Sequence record: LC768500.1
DNA length: 64,000 nucleotides
Reading direction: 5' to 3' (one strand)
Shown here piece after piece: positions 2,917 through 38,846 of this stretch; positions within the stretch are counted from its first letter, which is position 1; the number at the start of each line of letters is the position of its first letter. Both the position numbers and the translations under genes were made by a program. A model generated the notes under the pieces. The model worked only from the letters and a program-made list of their open reading frames with translations. It was not told where the DNA came from and did no database searches.

Positions 2917-2950
2917 CTACTCCTACGTCCTTAACGGGGCGTAGGAGTAG
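2917..2950. terminator. Intergenic hairpin, CTCCTAC family
   Basis: CTACTCCTACGTCC / GGGCGTAGGAGTAG arms directly after stop codon. Confidence 0.7.
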
Positions 2951-3013
2951 TTCGTTAATTATAACTGACTTTTTTAATATATAACCACCAACGTTCATTT
3001 AGGACATAACACC

Positions 3014-3220
3014 ATGTTGTATGACGCAATTGAAGTTTGTTTTATCGTAATCTCCATTCTTTCCTTTATCTGGGTAATGAAGAAGAAAGGAACTGGGGCG
3101 ATGTTAATTATTGCGTTTTCTATTGTTGTCGTGGCAGGATGTCGTTATCAAGATAACGCCGATACCGAACAAGCTTTAGAGCATCCAAAATATACCAAAT
3201 CTAACTGCGGCTGTTTATAA
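3014..3220 (+). CDS. Small membrane protein / possible lipoprotein
   Basis: AGGA RBS; two hydrophobic segments; internal MKKK...VVAG-C lipobox-like signal. Confidence 0.6.
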   Translation: MLYDAIEVCFIVISILSFIWVMKKKGTGAMLIIAFSIVVVAGCRYQDNADTEQALEHPKYTKSNCGCL

Positions 3221-3232
3221 GAGGAACTGATT

Positions 3233-3526
3233 ATGTTTTATGATTTAGTCAAGGTTTGCAAGGAACTCGTATTTTCTCATACCTTCAACGAAAGCAATCC
3301 TGACAAGGGTTACTTCGATACCTGGAAGTGGCGTAAGTTACTCATTAACGTGGTAAGCGTAACGTATCACACCCCTAAGCTTGCCGCGCTCAGTCCGCTC
3401 TTAAAGGCTATTTCCAGTAAGCAAGACGGGCTGACAATTTCCCCACAAACCGACAGCCAAGGACGGGTCACGCGAATTACGGTGACACACAATAATAAAT
3501 CAGTGGGTTTCAGATTCAAACGTTAA
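3233..3526 (+). CDS. Hypothetical protein
   Basis: GAGGA RBS, tight operon spacing. Confidence 0.65.
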   Translation: MFYDLVKVCKELVFSHTFNESNPDKGYFDTWKWRKLLINVVSVTYHTPKLAALSPLLKAISSKQDGLTISPQTDSQGRVTRITVTHNNKSVGFRFKR

Positions 3527-4702: not shown

Positions 4703-4732
4703 ACTTTTTTGTTTTTAGAATAGGAGGGTGTA

Positions 4733-5986
4733 GTGCACGATGATTTTTATGACCGCCATGACCACGTTTTCGTTTTCGTGCAAAAATTTGATTTAGCTCA
4801 TCCTGAACTAATAGACCGAACCGTAGAGGAGAAATTCGAAATTTATACTAAGGACTATCCCGATTATGATTGTTGGGCTCAACTGGTTTATTATTTCAAG
4901 GACGGCGGGGTGTTTTCACCAGAAGGGGTGAGACTTTCAATGAGGGGGATGGTGGTTTCTCCGTTGAAAAGACTCAACCGACCCATCCACGAAAGAATAA
5001 ACGAAATGGTGTTCAGGGAAGGGGCGAAAAAACAGTCAGGTTATCCTAGGATAATGATCGGCGATTTAGGACTTTCAATGCACAGACTGATCGCATCTAC
5101 TTTCATAAAAAGACCCGATCATTTAAAGCTTATCCCATTTATGCTTTTACACGTCAATCATAAAAATGGGATTAAGAACGATTACAGACCTAATAACTTA
5201 GAATGGACTACTCCTAAGGAAAACGCGATCCATAGCGCCATGACGGGACTCACGCCACAGGGACTAGCCCACACAAAAACAATATCGGTACTCGGGTTCT
5301 TCTCTTTACCAGGAAAGTGGTTCGGGAAAACCATTTCATTTAGTGGAAATAAAGAGATTAATTCCGCAGAACTGTTTTCTCAAACAATGATACACGAAAA
5401 GGTTAGGGAAGGTGGGTTGTACAAGGGTTTTAAGTGGATTAGCGTATCTGAAGAAGAGTATAACAACCATCCACACGGTTTAGAAGATCCAGAATTTAAG
5501 AGATTTATCGACGAAGGGGGAAACACTTACCTTGATGAAAGAACTAATTTTCTTATAGGGACAGTGATTCACGAATGCGCTTATAAAGGGCTGCAATTTA
5601 TTATTTTCGGTGAAACAATGATCGAGCGTAACGGATTCCCGGCTAATCGTTTAATGGAGTTTTATAAATCCAAAGAATCGGATTCTTATTTATCAAAGGG
5701 ATGTCTTTTTGTGAGGGGGGATCTGTCCGACCTTGAAAAATTTCCGCGTGGAATACCCGATGAGCTGGTAACCATTTTATCTAGGGAGAGGGGAGATAAG
5801 TTCTATCCCGTGATCGCCAATAAAGATGGAGAGGATAAGTTATTTGCATCTAAAGAAGAGTTATCCGCGAACGGGTTTATTTATAAAGAGGTTAAGAAAA
5901 ATATACGGGGAGAGACGGGAAGTCATAGGGGTCACGCATTCAGATGGGCGGAACGATTATCGGGGTCGTTCCAACCGTCAGACTAG
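4733..5986 (+). CDS. Free-standing HNH homing endonuclease
   Basis: HRLIASTF...HVNHKNGIKNDYRPNNLEWTTPKENAIH; GGGAGG RBS before GTG. Confidence 0.85.
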   Translation: MHDDFYDRHDHVFVFVQKFDLAHPELIDRTVEEKFEIYTKDYPDYDCWAQLVYYFKDGGVFSPEGVRLSMRGMVVSPLKRLNRPIHERINEMVFREGAKKQSGYPRIMIGDLGLSMHRLIASTFIKRPDHLKLIPFMLLHVNHKNGIKNDYRPNNLEWTTPKENAIHSAMTGLTPQGLAHTKTISVLGFFSLPGKWFGKTISFSGNKEINSAELFSQTMIHEKVREGGLYKGFKWISVSEEEYNNHPHGLEDPEFKRFIDEGGNTYLDERTNFLIGTVIHECAYKGLQFIIFGETMIERNGFPANRLMEFYKSKESDSYLSKGCLFVRGDLSDLEKFPRGIPDELVTILSRERGDKFYPVIANKDGEDKLFASKEELSANGFIYKEVKKNIRGETGSHRGHAFRWAERLSGSFQPSD

Positions 5987-6078
5987 GACGTATCATGTGG
6001 TCCGCTGGCACGGGTAACCTCAAAGACACCATTGGACAAAGTAAACCCATCCCCGCCTCTCCAGAAATCACTGGTTAA
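5944..6078 (+). pseudogene. Possible 3' remnant of a displaced gene overlapping the HNH stop
   Basis: 44-codon frame (MGGTIIGVVPTVRLGRIMWSAGTGNLKDTIGQSKPIPASPEITG*) ending 8 nt before a terminator; weak similarity to the C-terminus of 4121-4663. Confidence 0.35.
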
Positions 6079-6086
6079 ACTTTATA

Positions 6087-6116
6087 ATAACTACCGGGAG
6101 ATTTCCCGGTAGTTAT
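6087..6116. terminator. Bidirectional terminator, TAACTACCG family
   Basis: ATAACTACCGGGA-gatt-TCCCGGTAGTTAT between convergent genes. Confidence 0.8.
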
Positions 6117-6119
6117 CAG

Positions 6120-8174
6120 TCAAAATAAATCCATGACGTTAGAGAGATATTTATTTAACGGTAATGTTTCTGATTCATTATTCATGATATCAAATGACTC
6201 ATTGCCGTCTATAACACGTAATGCTGGGTTATTAAGAGAACTCTGAGCTAATAATTGCTCGACGTTCTCTTTAGACCACTGCATGATATCTACGCTTCTG
6301 GTCATGATGTTTATTTCATTTCCAGTATCGAGTTCAATTAACCAGAAGAAACAAGGGGCGTCCTGCCCCTGTCTAAAGATCCTCGCCTTGGTTTGTTTCA
6401 TTTCGTAATCGCGCCAAGGGGCGTCCATCATAATCTCCTGATTTGCAACGACCATGTGCGCCCCTTCCTTTAGGGTCTTAAAGGTCGTAACCCCAGGATT
6501 ATACGTCGGATCATCAGTGAATATACTAATGAGTTTCTCTTTACTTAATTCTGCGTCCCCGTAAACGAGTAAGGGTTTTAATCCCTCTTCCTTAAGATAA
6601 GTGTTAACTTCATTAAGGACGTCGACATAAGAAGTAAAGATTAATGTTTTCTTTTCTACCTGATTAATAAGCCCTGGAAGATTAGCATGCCTTACTACTG
6701 ATCTGACCGCATCAATCCTCGCTTTACCCAAGACATTCCCTAACGCCTCACCTTTGATCTTTAATCCCACATATTTTACTGCTGATTTAATATTTCTGAA
6801 TTGTTTCAGTTTATCTCCTCGTAAGCGGGCTTCAATATCGATCTCGACGTTCTTAGCATATTGAGAGTCTTCGGAGTCGGTGAAGTTATTATATCCTTGT
6901 GTTCTGAACTTATTAACGATCTGACGATAACGAACCAATCTTCCTAATTGGGATGGATCGTCTTTTACATAATGTTCGTAATCTTCCAGAACGTGATTAA
7001 AGAAATTGAGGAACGTTGGCATGTTTGTTTCGTAAAACTTAACACGCTGTTGTATGTAAGCTAACATGTCAAGTCGTATTGCTTTTAGAGTGAATCTTTC
7101 TCCGCCGGGTACGACGACTGGAAGCATGACTACGTCAGGTTCTTCATCTAGCCCCACAACGCTGTCTATGACGTATCTCGTCTTTCCTAAGCGATGGGCG
7201 AGCAATTCATTGAGTTTATCTCTGGACAAGCCATAGGACTTCAGGAAGCGTTCTCGGGCATTGCCTTTAAAGAATGGATCGATCGCACAGAACATCGGAT
7301 ATGTTTCTTTCCCGGAATTTTTTAACAAGGTTCCGCTCATAGGCAGAGCGTCTTTAAAGTCGAAGTGGTCTACAACGGAAATCAAGTTTTGCGTTTGTTT
7401 AGAGGAAAGTTCGTTAAAGTTATGGCTTTCATCGATAACAAGGTCGACCCCACCGTTGCCAGCAAACTCAAAAATGCGTTCCACCGCTTTAAAGAAATCC
7501 GGTGATCGGGTGGCTTCGATATGGAATACGTAATATTCGGCGTCTCTATCCAACGGTCTATTTTGTCGAGTGGTCCAGTATTTGGGGGGAGTGACGAATA
7601 CCTTTTCTTCAATGTGAAATTTCCAAACTGTATTTAGCACAACGTCAGGAGCAATAATGATATGTTTCTTATTCCCCGTCAGACGCGTCCACATTAAGGC
7701 CGTAGGCGTTTTTCCTGAACCAGGTTTAGCGTCTAATAGCAATCCCTTTAGGTGATAAGATGACTTAATTCCTTTATACATTTCTAAGAACCCCATCTGA
7801 GTAGGATGTGGTTTTATTTTAAACTGCTTTAAAAAAGAAGCTTTGTCTATCGGATAAGCTGTAGGGGTAACGGTATCCTTTATCCAAGTATCCGTTCTGA
7901 GTTTAATTTGGAGTTCGTTAAGGTTCTTGCGACTACTCCAGGTATTTCTTGACTGGAGTATCTTTGTTATTAGATGATCCAACTCCAATAAGAAAAAGTT
8001 ATCCGTAACGAACTTATTGGACCCAACACGTCTGAACATATAACGACCTGGCGTGCTTGTACCATACGCGGTCTGTATGTCGTCATTAAAGTTACGGAAG
8101 TTAACATGATTGATTTCCGTAATAGTCGGTCCTTGTTTAACATCAGGCCCAAAGATATAGTTTAACATCACCAA
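6120..8174 (-). CDS. SF2 (SNF2/DEAD-like) helicase
   Basis: DAKPGSGKT motif I, VIDESH motif II, SGT motif III, QTKARIFRQGQ motif VI; ATG at 8168 is an alternative start. Confidence 0.85.
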   Translation of the reverse strand: MVMLNYIFGPDVKQGPTITEINHVNFRNFNDDIQTAYGTSTPGRYMFRRVGSNKFVTDNFFLLELDHLITKILQSRNTWSSRKNLNELQIKLRTDTWIKDTVTPTAYPIDKASFLKQFKIKPHPTQMGFLEMYKGIKSSYHLKGLLLDAKPGSGKTPTALMWTRLTGNKKHIIIAPDVVLNTVWKFHIEEKVFVTPPKYWTTRQNRPLDRDAEYYVFHIEATRSPDFFKAVERIFEFAGNGGVDLVIDESHNFNELSSKQTQNLISVVDHFDFKDALPMSGTLLKNSGKETYPMFCAIDPFFKGNARERFLKSYGLSRDKLNELLAHRLGKTRYVIDSVVGLDEEPDVVMLPVVVPGGERFTLKAIRLDMLAYIQQRVKFYETNMPTFLNFFNHVLEDYEHYVKDDPSQLGRLVRYRQIVNKFRTQGYNNFTDSEDSQYAKNVEIDIEARLRGDKLKQFRNIKSAVKYVGLKIKGEALGNVLGKARIDAVRSVVRHANLPGLINQVEKKTLIFTSYVDVLNEVNTYLKEEGLKPLLVYGDAELSKEKLISIFTDDPTYNPGVTTFKTLKEGAHMVVANQEIMMDAPWRDYEMKQTKARIFRQGQDAPCFFWLIELDTGNEINIMTRSVDIMQWSKENVEQLLAQSSLNNPALRVIDGNESFDIMNNESETLPLNKYLSNVMDLF

Positions 8175-21005: not shown

Positions 21006-22058
21006 TCACTCTCGCTCAATTCTTTTAATAAAATAATTCTTATACATTCCATTGTTCCGATAAGACCGATTCAGGTTAGCCGAGTTGGTTCCGAAATTGG
21101 TTAACTCTATTGTTCCGGTTAGTCTGGTGACGCACTTAGTGCGTTTATGAGTCAATTCCCATATCACTCTGTCAGACCTATTCGACTTCCTCCCGGTTCT
21201 ATCGTAATTATAATCTCTTATTGCATTTATCAAATTCTGCTCGGGATCTTTATAGTGTTTGGTGTACTCTTCCTTGGTTACCTCTTCCCATTTACATCCC
21301 TTATAGGTTTTAGCTTTACCTGTCCTAATGGCGTGAAGATTACGATTATCCAATCCAAATTTAGCGCATTGTTCCTTGCCGCAAACGTATATCACTCTTT
21401 TCTTGAATCCTGGGATATCAATCACAGTACCTTTCATGGGAATGACGAAAGGATGCGACAAGTGCTTATGGGATACAAGGAGGTTATTCTCTTTGGCATG
21501 TTGCTTGTTCTGTTGTGGCGTGGTCCATTCTAATGAATTTACGTCGTTATCATCCTTTCCCTTTAAGTGGTTAACTTCAAGTTCAGAATAATCGTAAAGA
21601 TTGAGCTCATCAGGTTTTGGAATCCAGGACGACGCAACGATCCTGTGCACCATCATTACGTATCCTGATTTCATATATACTTTATAACCAAAATGGCTAA
21701 ACGTTCCTTTAACCATTTTGTACGTTCTTAAATTAAAAATTCTACCTCTGTTACTCACCCAAATATAAGTAAAAGATGTTGATGTTTTCTTATTAATATT
21801 GAGGTTCTTCGGGCTGTACGGAAAATAACTTGCCGGAACCCAATACTCTGATCTGGGATCTTCTTTTAATAATTTTGTTAACTTGGCATAATAAGCTTTC
21901 TTACGTTCTTCGTGCGATAAAAGATTCAATAAAGCGTTAGCCTTTTTTCCCATCGCATCAATAATAGATTTATATTCTTTAACAAATAACGGGAGATTTC
22001 CTCTAGCTATTTCATCCCATTCTTCTTCAGTTCTTATTCGCGGCGGTCTGATTTTCAT
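21006..22058 (-). CDS. Free-standing HNH homing endonuclease
   Basis: VSNRGRI, HRIVASSW, EVNHLKGKDDNDVNSLEWTTPQQNKQH; GGAG RBS favours ATG 22058 over 22091. Confidence 0.85.
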   Translation of the reverse strand: MKIRPPRIRTEEEWDEIARGNLPLFVKEYKSIIDAMGKKANALLNLLSHEERKKAYYAKLTKLLKEDPRSEYWVPASYFPYSPKNLNINKKTSTSFTYIWVSNRGRIFNLRTYKMVKGTFSHFGYKVYMKSGYVMMVHRIVASSWIPKPDELNLYDYSELEVNHLKGKDDNDVNSLEWTTPQQNKQHAKENNLLVSHKHLSHPFVIPMKGTVIDIPGFKKRVIYVCGKEQCAKFGLDNRNLHAIRTGKAKTYKGCKWEEVTKEEYTKHYKDPEQNLINAIRDYNYDRTGRKSNRSDRVIWELTHKRTKCVTRLTGTIELTNFGTNSANLNRSYRNNGMYKNYFIKRIERE

Positions 22059-22145
22059 GGTTACACTGCTCCAGATTACATTATTTATCATATAATAAGA
22101 AGCAGTGGTTTTCCATTAACAATACAAACCCTTGATATTAAAGGG

Positions 22146-31165: not shown

Positions 31166-32605
31166 ATGCAACCTACTAATATTACGTTATTGAACCCAAA
31201 CAAAGTGGCTTGGGCTCTCATGAAAGCCGTGACGTCAACAGACGTCCATGAGGGGATGACCAACAACCTTCATGAAGATGGTTTATACTCTCCAACAATC
31301 TTCGGTCGTGTCGGTACCGACCAACGAGATAAAACTCAATCTTACATCAATGTTAAGATTCCTGTCTTCAACCCGACTTATTTTAAGGCTTTGATTGGGT
31401 TAAAGGGTTTGTATCTCGGAATAATCAAAGGGACGGAATACGCCCTTTGGGACGCATCAGAACGCGACTTCATAAAATCAAACCTCCTGGAAGGAGAAAC
31501 CGGCTACAGTTTCTTTATGCGTCACTTTTACGACTTAGAGCCTAAGTTAAACGAAAGTTATAAACGCAAACAGCGCGTAGAACTCTTTAATAAATTTAAA
31601 GACATCGCGTTGACTAAAAACATCATTGTCCTGCCGGCTGGTATTCGCGATATTCAAATAGAACCTAACGGACAAATCGTCGAGCCTGAAATAAATGATT
31701 TCTATCGTAAACTGATCTTCCGTAGTCGCAGCGTGGTTATCCAGGAAGGTGAAGAAGATAATCCGATTTACGATAACATCCGTTGGGCGATTCAAAGCGT
31801 GTTTAACGATATCGATGATTATATCTTCCGACTGATGGAAGGTAAGCGTGGATTCTTACAGCGCCGAGTCTCAACTCGTGGTGTCGTCGGGGGTACTCGT
31901 AACGTTATTACCGCTCGTAAAGTTTCTGTTGCTGATGCGGATGATGATAATGGGGTTGACGTTAACACCACAGATATCGGGATGTATCAAGCGCTGTTGG
32001 GTTTCCAATACGTTGCACGATATGCGTTACTTAAAGGTTTCTTAAGCCGCGTGTTTACGGTAGGGTCAAGTACGGCTAAACTCGTCGACCCCAGAACCTT
32101 TGAATATCAATACGTTGAAGTTGAGAGCAACATTGTTGACAAATGGTTGTCAGCCGATGGACTCACCGCTTTGTTCAACGGATTCGGCACCAGGCACTTG
32201 CGTCATAAACCGATCAAAATCAACGGTTATTACATGGGCCTGACCTATGATGACGGTAAATATGTCAAGTTACTCGGTGACGTAACCGAACTTCCTCCTG
32301 GGTTTGATAAGAAGTTCTGCAAACCATTGACTTACATGGAACTCTTCTATTTAAGTTGTGTCGAAGAAATAGAAAAGAGGATGCTTCAGGTTACCCGTTA
32401 TCCGATTACTGGGATGGGGTCCATCTATCCTAGCTTCATCAAAATCAAAACAACGACTAACGCCCAAAAAAGAATTATTTTAGATGATTACTGGGAAGAA
32501 GGTTATCGTTGCACATACTACCCAGTCAGAGAAACTAAACCAGATTATTTCGACGCCATGAGTGTCGATGGTAGTCGGTTAGGATTACTCGGCGGGGACT
32601 TCGAT
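31166..32605 (+). CDS. rpoC: Virion RNA polymerase beta' subunit N-terminal part (phiKZ gp180-like), exon 1
   Basis: GLYSPTIFG, MEGKRGFLQRR, RNVI, QVTRYP, ends LGGDFD just before a TGA; completed by exon 2. Confidence 0.9.
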
Positions 32606-32985
32606 TGATTGCAAATCACATTTGCACAGTCCCACTAGACGCGAAAGCTCTAGTGCGTATCTCCTTGAATTGTCTGGGAAGCTCACAAAAGTCTGATGCC
32701 TGCTTAGCAGGAGCCGATAAGGCAGAAATAAGTTCAGACCTGACCTATGCTAAACAATAAGGCTAAGGGTTATTAACAAGGGGCCATCAGCAGCGAACCC
32801 TACTTCGGTAGGAGACGTTCAACGACTAGAGCGGAAGCGCTCGTACTCTTTACAGGGAGTAAAGAGGAAGTGGGGAGAGGGCTAAGTTCGGCACTAGCCG
32901 AATACGTCTAAGATATAGTCTCGACGTCCAAGGTAAGACTTGGAGTACGCTAAAGCGTAGGGGTGTGGAAACACCTTAAGAACCG
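32606..32985 (+). mobile_element. ORF-less group I intron (380 nt) in the DFD^GD catalytic motif
   Basis: 5' exon ends in U, intron ends in G; Q ATCAGCAGCGAA 32786-32797, R ACGTTCAACGACTA 32815-32828, S AAGATATAGTCT 32910-32921, P7 GACTA/TAGTC; removal restores DFDGD. Confidence 0.9.
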
Positions 32986-33159
32986 GGCGACCAGTTGAAT
33001 TCTAATTCAATCAACGGAGAGGATGCTATTGCTGAAGCTAAAGCTTTAATGGGCAGACGCGATTACTATATCACCGGCACGGGGCAGTTCCTTTACAGTC
33101 CAACGGTGGAACCTCACGAATTCTTATTCCGAAATCTCAGTAACGGACTCAACCTATGA
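32986..33159 (+). CDS. rpoC: vRNAP beta' exon 2 (not in ORF track)
   Basis: GDQLNSNSINGEDAIAEAKALMGRRDYYITGTGQFLYSPTVEPHEFLFRNLSNGLNL*; spliced product 537 aa; stop overlaps beta ATG (ATGA). Confidence 0.88.
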   Translation, partial: GDQLNSNSINGEDAIAEAKALMGRRDYYITGTGQFLYSPTVEPHEFLFRNLSNGLNL

Positions 33160-36100
33160 GCGTATTATACCAACAGTTCTTCCGTAATTTTGTTCTTAGG
33201 AAAAAACAAGAAATTACAAATCCTAAGTTTCACCATCTGACGGATATGGTGTTGCCGAGAGAATCGGTAATGATGTATCTACCGAAGACGCAAGAAGATA
33301 TCGGCCCAAGTACCGAGGAGCCCTTAATAGGGACTTACCCTGATGGGGTTAACATTTATTTCAACAGTCTTTATATAACCCCCATCGGAAGAACTCGACC
33401 CGTTCCCTTTAACGAAAAGCAATCTATACAGCTTTATCGTAAAAGCCATTTCAAATACAACTGGGCGAGGACGCTGTCCAACTACCTGAGCCGTCGTCAG
33501 GAACTGTTGGTAAACAACATAGCGATGGGACCCCATCGTCACCGTTATGTCTTTACTCGCTTTGTTCAGTTCGAACGAGCTTACAACCAACTGGCTTCTG
33601 GGATTGAAGCCGTTAAGCAAATGAGTAAGGAAACGACCCGCAATCAATACTGGCGAATAGAACTTCCTCCAAGCATCCCCGATTATCGTCAACTGCTGGT
33701 AGCCGTCGATCATTATAAGAAGGCGTTCAAAGACGGTGTTTATACCACCACTGACAATCAGGCTGTACTCCCGTTTAAGGGCTACGGTTCTTATTGGATC
33801 ATGGATTGGTACCTCTTCTTGATAGGCGAAAAGAACTACAGTCTGTTTAATCGCTTAGATAAAGAAGAAATGGATAAACTCCACATCATCTTTAGTCATA
33901 ATGGACTCAGCTGGGTAGTTAACCTTGGTATCGTCTCTCAATGGATGGAAGAACTTAACGACAAGCACGGCAATCCCACCAGTATGCGTGTTAACGCGGC
34001 TAAACGGTTCCTGCTTGGATTTAGGGCTCTGATAGCGGGCGGCACGCTAAGCGAAACCATAGAGGAGAAATCTCATGCCGCTGAGAATGTCGGATTGGGT
34101 ACTGGAACGCCAGAAGAGGAAAGAAGAAGCCAGGAAGCTAATAAGGAATCAGAAGAAGAACCGCTGGATCTCGATGAGTCTGAAGAGATTACTGATCAGT
34201 CTGTTACTATGCTTGATCTTTTCATGGGCAGCAAAAAGGCTGATACAGAATCTGATGATGACCAAGGAGGAGAGGATTCAGGAGGAGCTGATGAGAATCA
34301 CGGAGAAGAGTGGGCTGCAGCGGTCGACGATGAATTACTTTATAACGCCGAAACAGAAGGATTAGGGGAAACCAAGAAAGTTATTTTCAGTACCCCAGAA
34401 TCTGGTATCCTGAGAGCCTTAGAGCAAAGAGCCAAGGCCGGGACATTAACTGTTGCGGAACAACGTTATTACACTAATCTCGCGCAATCATACAAAACGA
34501 TCAAAATGCCTAACGGTGAAAGTCTTGAAAGTTTTGTTAAGATCGATCAGGCCAAACTCCGCCACCTTCCTGCTAAAATTGCTCCTGAGATGAGAGGGAT
34601 CATCGACCCTTCTCAGCTACAAAGTAGAGCGACCAATCTTAAAACGAAATACTCTGAAGAATTCCTTAATCGGGATATAGCCGGGATGATACTGAACATT
34701 CAGAACGCCGGTATCGTTTTAACCGACCTGAAACGTGAACGTATCGTCAATGCGGAATCGGCTTACGACGTTTATACCATGAACGTCCATCCTGTTGGCG
34801 GATCGCCTAAGACCGCAATGTTCCGCATCCCCAAAATTGACAAAGACGGAACCTTCACTGTCGATGGGGTAAAACAACATCTTCAACTTCAGCGTATGGA
34901 AATACCAATTCGTAAGATAAACTCTGAGCAGGTTGCTTTGACGAGTTATTATGACCGCAAGATCATGATGTCTCGTTCGACAAAGGTTGCAGATGATTAC
35001 GGATTGTGGCTGAACAAACAACTTATTCTGTTGGGTGAGGCCGGTAAAGTATCTGGGGTGTTGGGCGATGTCTATAATCGTAGTTACGCTGTTCCTCGTA
35101 CTTATTCTGCGTTAGCCAAGCGGTACCGAACATTAAAGGCTGGTGGGATTGAATTCAACTTCGATCTTTCTAGTCTTGTTGGCTCAGAGAAAGAAATCAA
35201 GAAACTGATTTCTCCTAACTGGGTTCCGGTGGCTAAAGAAGGTGACGGCTTCATCTTTATGGATGATGGCGGTAACCTTTACAAAGATAAGACACACATT
35301 GGTTCTTTCGAAAGCCGCTGTGGAATTGACACGACGAAGGCCCCAGTCGATATCGTTACGGTGAATGTAAACGGATACGCTTTCCCTATCGGTGTAGTGC
35401 TCGCTTACTACTTCGGATTCGACGAACTTCTTAAAGCACTCAATGCTGACTATCGGACCGTTCCGGCCGGTGAGAAAGTTCGGATGGGTCAGGACGAATA
35501 CGCGATAACCTTTAACGACGAAACGCTTATTTTCAACAGACGGGATAGTTTAACCGCACTTATCATGGGCGGATTCCGGAAGTTAGCGAATCTCAGTAAC
35601 TTCTCTCGCTATGACCTAAACACAAAAGGTGTATGGGTGCCGGCTATCGGGGATAAGAAAGTCAAACCTGGTCATTTTGATGAAATGCGTTTGATGTTCG
35701 AAATGTTCATCGATCCGATCACCAAATCTGAACTGGTTAAAAGGGGCTATCCGACTGAGCTTCATTATCTCATGATCGAAGGCGTGAAAATGCTGAACAC
35801 CGATCGAACTGCTCACGAGATAGAATTAACTGAGCAACGTTTCGTTGGGTATGAACGTTTTGCTGGCCGAGTCTATAATGAGATTGTTAAGTCAACGCGT
35901 CAATTCAGGAATAAAGGTAACGACAAACGTTTCACCTTCGATATGAACCCTGAAGCGGTTATCATGAGTATCATCACCGATACAAGTGTAAACCTAGTCG
36001 AAGAGGTTAACCCCATCCACGAAATCAAAGAACAGGAAGTTGTTACCTTTGGTGGTACTGGTGGGCGAAGTGAAACGACAATGGTCAGACGTACACGTGG

Positions 36101-36303
36101 TCAGCAAGAGAACTATGCTGGGGTTATCTCCGAGGCTGGTAAAGACTCCGGTAAAGTTGGGTTCGTGAGTTACTTAACGAGCAACCCTAAGATCGCCGAT
36201 TTCCGTGGTAACGTCGACCTAAGCATGCCTGACACTCTGAGCGGCAGACTGTCGGTAACATCCAACCTTTTAGCTCACTCGACCTCCGATGACCCAAAAC
36301 GGT
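33156..36303 (+). CDS. rpoB: Virion RNA polymerase beta subunit N-terminal part (phiKZ gp178-like), exon 1
   Basis: GTFTVDGVKQ, EVVTFGGTGGR, SEAGKDSGKVG, ends STSDDPKR. Confidence 0.88.
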
Positions 36304-36317
36304 TAACTGTAATATTT

Positions 36318-36350
36318 TCCTGAGTACAATATTATGTTGAGACTCAGGAG
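36318..36350 (+). promoter_or_regulatory. RBS-sequestering hairpin with TATG in loop
   Basis: TCCTGAGT (36318-36325) pairs with ACTCAGGA (36342-36349), covering the AGGAG RBS; TATG at 36333-36336. Confidence 0.6.
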
Positions 36351-36359
36351 CAAATTAAG

Positions 36360-37412
36360 ATGAAACCAATTGAGTGTAAAGATTTTCCAGGGTATTACGA
36401 GATACCCAATTTTTCCAAGTACTGCATTAATAAAAAATCAGATATTATTCATAAACGCAAAAACAAAAAAATCAGACAGTACGACGTTAAATCTTCTGTG
36501 ACGTCCAGGCCAGAAACCGGGTGTTATAAAAGAGTGACGATGTATTCTGATGATAAAAAACTCCACGCCTTTTCGGTCCATCGGTTAATGGGCTTGGTGT
36601 TTAAACATCCTGGTGCCGGGTTTCACTCTCTACAGGTCCACCACGGAGATGGGATAAAATTTCATAACGACATCGATAACTTAGAATGGGTTACACCCAA
36701 GACCAATATTGTTTTAGCAAACGATTATTACATGGGTAAAGCTAAAATACCTGTCCAAGCTAGGTCTAAAAACGGTGAAGTTCTAAATTTTTCTAATCTA
36801 AGTGATTGTGCTAAATTACTCGGGATCCATAGGACAACCCTTATCTCCAGATTAAGTACGTTTGGAGAAAAGTTTGTTCACCCAGAGGGCTATCAACTGA
36901 GGTACGGAAATTCCGATAAGCCATGGGTTGCACCAGACGAAGAATCAGCTAAGGACTTAGATGAGTTTTACTCGTCACCCATTTTGGTAAAAAATCTCAA
37001 CACTGGCGAAGTGAGGGAATTTAAAACAGCCAAAGGCGTGATGGAATTAATAGTAAGATCTCCGTCAAGCATAAGTACTTTGAGTAATGATTCGACTCAA
37101 CCCATTGTGATGGGTAAAGATAACGTACCGTACATTCTCATAAAAAAATATTCTGGGGTCGATTTCAGGAGAGTTGACGATCCAATGAATGATTTTGTCG
37201 AACAACAGACCAATACCAGAACGGTAGTTGCGACGAATGTTACGACTAATGAAAAGAGAGTTTATACGACCGCGCAGGCGTGCGCATCTGATTTTGGAAT
37301 AGGAAAAACTACACTTAATTGGCGTCTTAAGAAACCCATCCCTGGTGTTTTCGACGGATGGATTTTTAGATATTACGAGGCCCGTATGGGAGGAAACACC
37401 CATACGCAATAA
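36360..37412 (+). CDS. Intron-encoded HNH homing endonuclease
   Basis: FPGYYEI N-terminus, VHRLMG, QVHHGDGIKFHNDIDNLEWVTPKTN; repeated putative DNA-binding modules C-terminally. Confidence 0.88.
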   Translation: MKPIECKDFPGYYEIPNFSKYCINKKSDIIHKRKNKKIRQYDVKSSVTSRPETGCYKRVTMYSDDKKLHAFSVHRLMGLVFKHPGAGFHSLQVHHGDGIKFHNDIDNLEWVTPKTNIVLANDYYMGKAKIPVQARSKNGEVLNFSNLSDCAKLLGIHRTTLISRLSTFGEKFVHPEGYQLRYGNSDKPWVAPDEESAKDLDEFYSSPILVKNLNTGEVREFKTAKGVMELIVRSPSSISTLSNDSTQPIVMGKDNVPYILIKKYSGVDFRRVDDPMNDFVEQQTNTRTVVATNVTTNEKRVYTTAQACASDFGIGKTTLNWRLKKPIPGVFDGWIFRYYEARMGGNTHTQ

Positions 37413-37737
37413 TCTTTAATTGTTCTGGGACGATCTCGAAGACTCTCATACCAAAGCGGAATACGAAAGTATAGACGTCATGGTTTTAAAAGTTGAGAAG
37501 AGAGACGATCTAGCAGCGAAGCACCTACGTATCTTCGAGAGAAGAGATAGGGTGAACGTTCAACGACTATGGGTGAAACTCCCAGTAGATTTTACATGAA
37601 GTAATTTCGAAACAGGATTCCCTTCGAGTGAGCTGAAGAAGCTCGATACTCATGGGTGAAATATAGTCTGCTCCCTACGGCGACGTAGCGGCGGGTGTCA
37701 TAGCACACCGGGTTGAAGGAAGCAACCGGACATAAGG

Positions 37738-38846
37738 CTCTGTTCTCCGGGGTTCAGCAAAGCCAGGGGGTGTCTGCGACTAACTATCAGACCAACTGGT
37801 TACGTACCGGGGATGAATTGGTTATCGCACACCGGACATCCGAGCTTTATTCTAAACCAGCTAAACTCGACGGTAAAGTAATAAAGCTTACCAAAGAAGG
37901 CTTGGTGGTCGAATACAAGGATGGAACGACGGACAGTTATCCGTTAGGCTTAACCATCGGCAGTGCGTCTGGTGAATTCCACAGACACACAAGAGTCACT
38001 GATTTAAAAGTTGGTGATAGTTTCAATGCCGGGGATATTATCGGTTGGGACGAAATGTACTTTGAAAGGGATTTGGCTAACCCTAATCAGGTGGCGTGGA
38101 AATGCGGGGTAATGGTGAGGATTGCCTTTGTTGAGAATCAGTTCACGTTTGAAGACTCCATTGAGGTTTCTAAAGACTTCGCTGAGCAGACGAAAACGCC
38201 TTATTTGAAGTTGAAAGAATTCTCTTTAGACTTCGAACAAACTCTCGTCCCTCACGTAGAAGTCGGGTCGGAAGTCGACATGGACGCGATTTTATGCTCG
38301 ATAGAGGATCCCCACGTAAGTGGTCTGGACGATTCTGATGACACTTTCTCAGGATTAGAGCGTTTAGGGGTTAAACAAATTCGGTCTAACCATCATGGCC
38401 GTGTTGTTAAAATTGAGTGTGTTTATAACGGTTCAATTGAAGACATGTCAGATAGCCTGAAAGGGTTTGTGGCTAAGTTAGATAAAGAACGTCAACAGCT
38501 CAATAAGGTCACTCATACCGGGATCGTTAACGGTAACGTTGGGGGAAACACGTATGTTAAGAAAGCCAGTGTTGAACCTAATCGGGTTACGGTTAAAATC
38601 TTTATTGAGGATCTCAATAGCTCCGAAACCGCCGATAAATTTGTGGTCGGTAACCAGATGAAAGGTACCGTGGGGAATATCGTGAACTACACAATGCGTA
38701 CACTGGATGGTCGTATTGTCAAGATTCGATTCTCATTTAAATCGATGTTCAACCGTATGGTTCTGAGCTTACGAGATAAAATGGGCATCAATGAAGTTAA
38801 CGCCAACCGCACTTCGGCAGCAGTTAAAGCTTTCAGAGGAAAATAA
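37738..38846 (+). CDS. rpoB: vRNAP beta exon 2
   Basis: ENQFTFEDSIEVS (RpoB GYNFEDS) and KFVVGNQMKGTV (GDK..GRHGNKGV); spliced product 1418 aa. Confidence 0.88.

Follow-up and report, generated by a model that had tools for sequence, protein, structure and literature searches.

A nuclease-free group I intron in the DFDGD codons of the virion RNA polymerase beta' gene of Klebsiella phage phiKp_32, a recurrent insertion hot spot of jumbo phages

The DNA analysed here, referred to as the window, is a stretch of 64,000 nucleotides (nt) from Klebsiella phage phiKp_32 (LC768500.1, 100% identity by megablast), in which window position 31166 corresponds to position 217166 of the record. It contains a gene for a subunit of the virion RNA polymerase (RNAP) that is interrupted by an intron lacking an open reading frame (ORF). 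The ORF at 31166-32608 encodes 480 residues with the C-terminal end ...SRLGLLGGDFD, followed directly by a TGA. The frame beginning at 32986 (GDQLNSNSINGEDA..., translated as GDQLNSNSING...) comprises 57 codons, and its stop codon at 33157-33159 overlaps the ATG of the next gene. In the GenBank record the prematurely ending ORF is annotated as "hypothetical protein" and 32986-33156 is without any feature. This agrees with a first-pass annotation, made from the letters of the sequence alone, which had proposed an unannotated 57-codon exon starting with GDQ. An uninterrupted gene of 1614 nt (537 amino acids, i.e. 480 plus 57) is present in the Klebsiella phages Miami, YC1 and KPN8 as well as in Stenotrophomonas phage BUCTxx100.

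Compared by blastn with the intronless Miami allele (L001), window 31166-32605 corresponds to 1501-2940 and window 32986-33400 to 2941-3355. Since both flanks map to contiguous Miami sequence, the insertion comprises exactly 32606-32985 (380 nt, plus strand like all features of this gene), and shifting either boundary by a single base loses the match to the intronless allele. Exon 1 (31166-32605) shows 99.2% identity to CPT_Miami_232, and the protein encoded by exon 2 (32986-33159, 57 codons plus stop) is 100% identical to Miami residues 481-537. The base preceding the intron is U32605. The intron ends at G32985, as no other end agrees with the intronless alleles and keeps the exons in frame, and its first three bases, TGA, form the stop of the unspliced frame. 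Removal of 32606-32985 hence restores the DFDGD motif exactly, as had been proposed.

A tblastn search of 300 jumbo-phage records revealed essentially one best locus per genome for this gene. The phiKZ locus is PHIKZ180 (33.7% identity, E 8e-70), that of PhiPA3 gp212. On one side the phiKp_32 gene adjoins a gp181-like gene for a product of 2268 amino acids, on the other a gp178-like beta gene. The phiKZ protein gp180 is a virion RNAP subunit packaged in the particles, and DFDGD is an essential Mg-binding element (PMC10612078). The equivalent subunit of SPN3US, gp240, was detected in virions (PMC5105663). Pfam gave no match in either exon product, and a phmmer search of the PDB with the intact Miami protein yielded nothing significant, with a local ADFDGDE(MN) match to RPC1 at E = 1.5. 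Because these direct searches were uninformative, the identity of the subunit was taken from its orthology to phiKZ gp180, which, along with synteny and the DFDGD motif at the end of the DPBB region, supports an assignment as the virion RNAP beta' N-terminal subunit, in line with the first-pass annotation. As phiKp_32 is a viable phage isolate, the gene must yield an active enzyme.

The Rfam model RF00028 (Intron_gpI) matched positions 32613-32943 over its full length with 37.5 bits (E 5.6e-6 for the whole window), a match reported only under an E-value threshold, as the gathering score of this model is 50 bits. Most of the aligned relatives reach or touch the Rfam threshold (49.9-68.9 bits), and the closest one, the intron of Raoultella phage VB_ZK_P1, scores 34.5 bits. 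We aligned the intron core with those of ten relatives (11 introns in total) and derived a consensus by RNAalifold. The helices P2, P3, P4, P5 with its extension, P6/P6a, P7.1, P8, P9 and P9.1 were recovered. The consensus comprises 62 pairs, of which 92% are canonical, and 42 of the 62 exhibit compensatory double changes. Sliding the 3' partners by 1-3 columns reduced the canonical fraction to 34-44%, and 500 column shuffles reached 76% at most. The P7 pseudoknot (GACUA/UAGUC) is 100% paired across the family and shows one compensatory change. All helices are intact in the phiKp_32 copy; a small number of seeming mismatches are due to a shifted register at the variable tips of hairpins.

Within the core, the P2 hairpin with a GAAA loop (32633-32655) has covarying pairs and is followed by the 5' strand of P3 (32661-32666), which forms six pairs with the 3' strand at 32872-32877, four of them compensatory across the family. 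The P4-P5 domain (32671-32792) consists of P4 (32671-77/32787-92, including the P and Q elements), P5 (32681-84/32781-84) and P5a-c (32685-32780). Family alignment and fold define P6/P6a (32793-32818, CCUAC-UUCG-GUAGG) as well as the segment 32879-32921, which contains P8 (32879-32909), J8/7 and the 3' strand of P7 with the S element AAGAUAUAGUCU. The J6/7 segment together with the 5' strand of P7 and the R element UCAACGACUA (32819-32828) is an invariant block in the 11 introns, and its GACUA (32824-28) pairs with UAGUC (32916-20). Two hairpins lie at 32829-32866, P7.1 (32829-42), which covaries, and P7.2 (32846-66); both appear in the single-sequence fold. P9, P9.1, P9.2 and the 3' tail with the terminal G32985 occupy 32927-32985 according to alignment, fold and frame restoration. 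Thus, besides the Q, R, S and P7 elements named in the first-pass annotation, the classical P element is present, too. The presence of P7.1 and P7.2 places the intron in subgroup IA, which is typical for phages.

The first-pass annotation had left P1 and P10 open. P1 and its capping hairpin (32603-32631) can now be assigned from folding and from the covariation between guide and exon; a convincing P10 was not detected. In P1, the exon bases GAU and the intron bases UG (32603-07) pair with CAGUC (32627-31), with a U32605·G32629 wobble at the 5' splice site, and a hairpin of 7 base pairs (UGCAAAU/AUUUGCA, 32610-26) with the loop CAC caps the helix. Folding of 32597-32657 gave a minimum free energy structure identical to the centroid (z = -4.6), in which P2 follows P1. 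Covariation between guide and exon is seen in 10 of the 11 family members. In six members from virion RNAP genes an (N)AGUC block directly in front of P2 pairs with exon GAU|U. The guide is UGUC and pairs with GAU|A where the first intron base is A, as in the non-virion copy of Vibrio phage 2 TSL-2019 (TSL2), and it is AGCC or UGCC where the exon ends with GGU (SPLA3, Proteus phage 7), AGCC pairing with GGU|U. The stem capping P1 differs in sequence in each member and always pairs: GCAAAU/AUUUGC in phiKp_32, AUGUGUUU/AAACACAU in VB_ZK_P1, AGUGAUG/CAUCACU in EL, GAAUUAGU/ACUAAUUC in TSL2 and ACACUAACACUC/GAGUGUUAGUGU in AVP1. In the ORF-bearing members this stem closes the loop holding the HNH ORF. 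A P1 formed by exon GGGACU and AGUCCC was rejected, because the splice site would be 5 nt off and the pairing is missing in EL, VP4B and TSL2. The junction G^DNRQ was likewise rejected for VB_ZK_P1, where it would give C at position -1 and two extra codons.

At the place where relatives hold an HNH gene, the P1 loop of the phiKp_32 intron has a length of 3 nt. Nowhere in the intron does a frame stay free of stops for more than 50 codons, and a tblastn search with six HNH proteins revealed no HNH remnant (best E = 2.7). The intron is thus devoid of an ORF, as the first reading had stated.

A blastn search with the intron alone detected related cores in jumbo phages of Raoultella, Pseudomonas (EL group), Vibrio/Photobacterium, Salmonella/Proteus (SPN3US group) and Aeromonas. 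Alignments of the Miami protein stop just before the motif in VB_ZK_P1, PDCC-1, VP4B, TSL2, PS1, PS2, ACP1, CF8, Yong MS32 and the EL group, and about one in ten of the deposited relatives is interrupted at DFDGD. The same applies to 4 of 42 IMG/VR loci, all four of which are known isolates. Reading of the junctions revealed four insertion points within 12 nt of the virion gene, namely D^YDGD (TSL2), DFD^GD (phiKp_32 and, as DHD^GD, EL), DFDG^D (PS1 and ACP1, with an unrelated insert of about 260 nt) and DFDGD^Q (VB_ZK_P1 and, as DYDGD^Q, VP4B). The phiKp_32 intron family is found at the first, second and fourth of these points, each time behind a GAU codon. Members are thus found behind all three Asp codons, which fits a guide that reads little more than GAU. 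The virion gene introns of VB_ZK_P1, EL and TSL2 carry HNH_3 proteins of 416-424 amino acids in the P1 loop, and VP4B is ORF-less. Intron ORFs of the relatives encode HNH_3 proteins, some with an additional NUMOD1; gp270 of VB_ZK_P1 and gp185 of EL share 33% identity over their full length. The literature consulted contained no description of an HNH gene located in the P1 loop.

The paralogous gene for the non-virion RNAP beta' N-terminal subunit, which adjoins the nuclear-shell gene, carries the same intron family in ORF-less and HNH forms. Insertions at NAD^FDGD were found in TSL2 (ORF-less, L013 2460-2851) and AVP1 (HNH, L015 1315-2782), and insertions at MANG^DKQDFDGD, four codons upstream of DFDGD, in SPLA3 (ORF-less, L014 2386-2732) and Proteus phage 7 (HNH, L012 1437-2831). 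In a tree of the cores, which has 11 tips and modest support, the introns of the virion gene cluster. The phiKp_32 and VB_ZK_P1 introns are sisters (support 0.975), their sites being 6 nt apart, and EL (DFD^GD) groups with VP4B (DFDGD^). As sisters in the tree sit at different sites, insertion sites have changed within the lineage.

Further observations were made at this hot spot. The insert of PS1 (L005 5443-5702; the same in ACP1, L008) is ORF-less, follows GGU and ends in G. It is structured (z = -3.5), showed no Rfam match even at E = 10 and is presumably another intron type. The virion beta' intron of Photobacterium phage PDCC-1 (L006 5432-7151) is a chimera, of which the 5' splice site, the HNH ORF and the left half of P2 match TSL2 and the remainder matches VP4B. 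This locus is without the 12 nt coding for YDGD, has a disrupted P2 and carries C at position -1, and the catalytic motif is not encodable as deposited; the locus may be a mis-assembly or a recombinant. Among Goslar, LucasX, U1B, sp. LC, Parshik and pEa_SNUABM_43, several tblastn alignments end near residue 443-444 and close relatives reach 532, so that another insertion site may exist about 36 codons upstream of DFDGD. In phiKZ, a free-standing HNH gene, gp179 (AF399011.1, 186687-187517), lies directly downstream of gp180. Its product is a homolog of the intron nucleases of the DFDGD site (26.7% identity, E 6e-16) and may be a free-standing relative parked beside its target gene.

The exon sequence next to the phiKp_32 intron is conspicuously recoded. 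Background divergence between phiKp_32 and Miami is 2.7%. In comparison with five relatives the gene has 28 substitutions private to phiKp_32, and 13 of them, all synonymous, lie within -34 to +24 nt of the intron: five in the last 34 nt of exon 1 (32572-32593) and eight in the first 24 nt of exon 2 (32994-33009). With its 8 mismatches the start of exon 2 exceeds every other 24-nt window in 15.1 kb in divergence (fraction of windows 6e-4). This recoding has the appearance of co-conversion from a diverged donor and points to an acquisition by recombination; it would also alter the recognition site of a nuclease. In VB_ZK_P1 (L002 2946), the sole private substitution within about 75 nt of its own intron is GAC to GAT in the third Asp codon. 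This C to T change falls at the -1 position of that intron, creating the U required for the splice-site wobble.

We consider 32606-32985 very probably a functional self-splicing group I intron of the T4/SPO1-like subgroup IA without a homing-endonuclease gene. According to the model suggested by the fold, the CAGUC guide (32627-31) would pair with exon GAU and intron UG and thereby set U32605·G32629 at the 5' splice site. Guanosine would attack this site, and the terminal G32985 would then define the 3' splice site. The exons would be joined as ...GAC UUC GAU|GGC GAC CAG... (junction GACTTCGAT|GGCGACCAG), giving the 537-residue protein with DFDGD; from unspliced RNA, a product of 480 residues without the third Asp would be expected. 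The lineage occupies catalytic-loop codons of both beta' paralogs of chimalliviruses, with an I-HmuI-like HNH gene in the P1 loop of relatives. Most likely, the intron entered phiKp_32 by recombination from a diverged intron-bearing allele, leaving short co-converted exon flanks. Its nuclease gene would either have been lost or never have been present, and the intron would now be passively inherited.

Several points weigh against this reading. The Rfam score remains below the gathering score (37.5 versus 50 bits), and that of the closest relative is low as well. P1 pairs only three exon bases, and inspection by eye of five family members revealed no convincing P10, the maximum in phiKp_32 being one pair (G32987-C32627). 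We infer splicing activity, like the route of acquisition and any immunity function, from sequence comparison. A loss of the nuclease gene is indistinguishable from its primary absence. The search for a donor of the recoded flanks was negative in all collections: exact-pattern scans for the P2-P3 segment of the intron gave no hit in IMG/VR or JGI metagenomes, scans for the recoded start of exon 2 were negative as well, and none of 60 loci represents a donor lineage. Furthermore, nine private substitutions lie within 31 nt at gene positions 489-519 (window 31654-31684), in exon 1 and far from the introns. Short mosaic patches therefore arise in this gene independently of the intron, which weakens the trace of co-conversion.

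The phiKp_32 allele might have a function in addition to such an origin by recombination, which it would supplement and not replace. The ORF-less intron and the recoded flanks together might destroy the recognition site of HNH enzymes from sister introns, of the type of VB_ZK_P1 gp270 or EL gp185, which would otherwise nick the intronless DFDGD region during co-infection. The closest intron-bearing relative indeed harbours an HNH-bearing sister intron 6 nt downstream, and the first 24 nt of exon 2 are packed with eight synonymous changes. Enzymes of the I-HmuI type make most of their contacts in the region matching this start of exon 2. A precedent for nucleases of this kind harming intronless competitors is gp210 of PhiPA3 (PMC11620839). 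However, neutral co-conversion from a donor explains the recoding equally well, and phiKp_32 and VB_ZK_P1 were isolated on different hosts. We therefore regard an immunity function as possible rather than probable. Rather doubtful as a whole is a wider scenario, in which one GAU-reading lineage hopped among all three Asp codons of DFDGD and into the non-virion paralog, the sister introns compete for overlapping sites, and the ORF-less intron and recoded flanks of phiKp_32 serve as an immunity allele blocking the HNH enzyme of the sister intron 6 nt downstream. In the literature consulted we came across neither the three-Asp-codon pattern brought about by a GAU-reading guide nor the apparent competition of sister introns for overlapping sites, and literature searches for phiKp_32 and for introns in connection with the DFDGD motif gave no result.

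Alternatively, the lineage could move among GAU codons by way of RNA, i.e. by reverse splicing followed by reverse transcription and recombination. The ORF-less form would then represent the ancestral mobile element, which HNH genes joined later as passengers. A guide reading only GAU and one further base would suit this mode, the tree pairs phiKp_32/VB_ZK_P1 and EL/VP4B imply a change of site within a clade, and in Miami-type genes the second Asp codon is the sole GAT among the three. We nevertheless consider reverse splicing unlikely: the tree has only 11 tips with modest support, the co-conversion tracts favour recombination at the DNA level in phiKp_32, and these phages are not known to encode a reverse transcriptase.

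A second group I intron, here called intron 2 (36303-37736), interrupts the gp178-like virion RNAP beta gene, which is the next gene downstream, 3.3 kb from the intron described above (intron 1). Rfam detected it at 37354-37690 with 51.9 bits, and its HNH_3/NUMOD1 ORF (36360-37412) is located in the 5' part and runs into P2. The insertion site SDDPKR^A is 9 nt from that of PhiPA3 gp210. Compared to Miami the junction is R^A, with G rather than U at position -1. If both sites are moved by +1, a U·G wobble and a terminal G are obtained, but Ala is replaced by Ser; relatives have Ser or Thr at this position. The annotated CDS 37713-38846 begins inside intron 2. The copies of intron 2 in phiKp_32 and VB_ZK_P1 share 99.0% identity, and among six Miami-like phages it occurs only in these two. 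For intron 1 the identity between the two phages is 70.9% and the site is different, and the sequence between the two introns is ordinary lineage sequence with 97.1% identity to Miami. These differences in identity and site, together with the ordinary sequence in between, indicate separate histories of the two introns.

The window holds three HNH_3 genes, and the one nearest to intron 1 is that inside intron 2. The others are at least 10 kb away from intron 1 and share only the catalytic core with the nucleases of the DFDGD site; the free-standing HNH gene at 4724-5983 was rejected as a close relative of these nucleases for this reason. Compared to Miami, phiKp_32 has specific insertions at 225-1227, 4725-6219 and 21006-22145. 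The ORFs of the first two (128-1225 and 4724-5983) are free-standing HNH_3 genes. In the third lies a minus-strand ORF for 361 amino acids (21006-22091) without Pfam match, and VB_ZK_P1 has an ORF at the same place. The "four HNHs" mentioned in the first-pass annotation are probably the ORFs of these three insertions plus that of intron 2.

The first-pass annotation had proposed that intron 1 spread by co-conversion with the HNH intron at 36303-37736 or by collaborative homing with a free-standing nuclease. Three HNH_3 genes in the window would fit this idea, as would the distribution among the six Miami-like phages, where phiKp_32 and VB_ZK_P1 have both introns and the other four have neither. 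However, the introns are separated by 3.3 kb of ordinary sequence and the recoded tracts extend for -34 and +24 nt only, i.e. for no more than 34 nt. Owing to the separate histories indicated by identities of 99.0% and 70.9%, co-conversion with the neighbouring intron is unsupported. With regard to collaborative homing, no cognate free-standing nuclease was found: the HNH proteins of the window match the DFDGD-site nucleases in the catalytic core only, and no gene of the VB270 type was present in phiKp_32 among the matches listed (40 of 43 tblastn records, E <= 1e-8). We therefore regard both proposed routes as very improbable. That the intron is dead and unspliced, leaving a pseudogene or two separate polypeptides, is hardly credible in spite of the sub-threshold Rfam score, the missing P10 and the shortened ORF annotated in the record, as all core helices and junction sequences are intact, the exon 2 protein is 100% conserved, its first possible start codon (TTG at 32995) lies beyond the GD codons, and DFDGD of gp180 is essential (PMC10612078) in what is a plaque-forming isolate.

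The intron of Pseudomonas phage EL (gp184/gp186; 51.1 bits) resembles that of phiKp_32 in gene, insertion point (DHD^GD), family, the P1 pairing GAU|U with AGUC, and core. It differs by a 423-residue HNH_3 protein, gp185, encoded in the P1 loop instead of a 3-nt loop, and its core is about 62% identical to that of phiKp_32. The closest ribozyme core is found in Raoultella phage VB_ZK_P1, in a nearly identical host gene, but that intron sits 6 nt downstream (DFDGD^Q) and contains the gene for the 424-residue HNH protein gp270, and its flanks are Miami-like except for the C to T change at -1. ORF-less relatives of the same family with a small, separately annotated exon 2 exist in Vibrio phage VP4B (virion RNAP), Salmonella phage SPLA3 and Vibrio phage TSL2 (both non-virion RNAP). 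They differ in their sites (DYDGD^Q, MANG^DKQDFDGD and NAD^FDGD, respectively), and VP4B retains a P1 loop of about 60 nt.

The PhiPA3 gp210 intron likewise belongs to group I and interrupts a chimallivirus virion RNAP gene at a catalytic or conserved site. The first-pass annotation had assigned gp210 to a non-virion RNAP gene, which is incorrect: the original publication locates its intron in the gp178 homolog, the gene for the beta subunit of the virion RNAP (PMC11620839). This intron differs from intron 1 of phiKp_32 by its location in the beta subunit gene, after a conserved DD, and by carrying a nuclease, so that its counterpart in phiKp_32 is intron 2. The HNH protein gp210 is a distant homolog of the DFDGD-site nucleases. 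Elements of this kind act in phage-phage competition (Birkholz et al. 2024, PMC11620839).

The classical phage IA2 introns (T4 td, nrdB and sunY, SPO1, Twort) and the AR9 RNAP introns share self-splicing IA cores with P7.1/P7.2, insertion at active-site codons in essential genes and the occurrence of forms with and without ORF, and differ from the phiKp_32 intron in host gene or phage group. Group I introns that lack an ORF and sit at active-site codons are a classical finding in phages. RNAP genes of jumbo phages have been described as "frequently disrupted by introns" (bioRxiv 10.1101/2020.12.14.422802), and introns are known in RNAP genes of AR9, Staphylococcus jumbo phages, the SPN3US/phiKZ scheme (PMC5105663, Fig. 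7) and PhiPA3. The phiKp_32 intron is thus not unusual: the hot spot is recurrent and family-wide, EL is interrupted at the same position, and other ORF-less copies exist.

In phiKp_32 the catalytic subunit of the virion RNAP is mis-annotated as a shortened hypothetical protein with one exon missing, and the same error is found in many jumbo-phage genomes. One intron family and its HNH enzymes crowd into the Mg-binding loop of the two phage RNAP beta' paralogs, so that the picture of intron-nuclease warfare known from PhiPA3 gp210 extends beyond the beta subunit to the catalytic beta' subunit. Alleles without intron, with an ORF-less intron and with an HNH-bearing intron, at sites separated by 3-12 nt, form a natural series suited to tests of immunity and of site change. 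Group I introns of other phages depend on coupled translation, which raises the question of how such introns splice in phages that separate transcription from translation.

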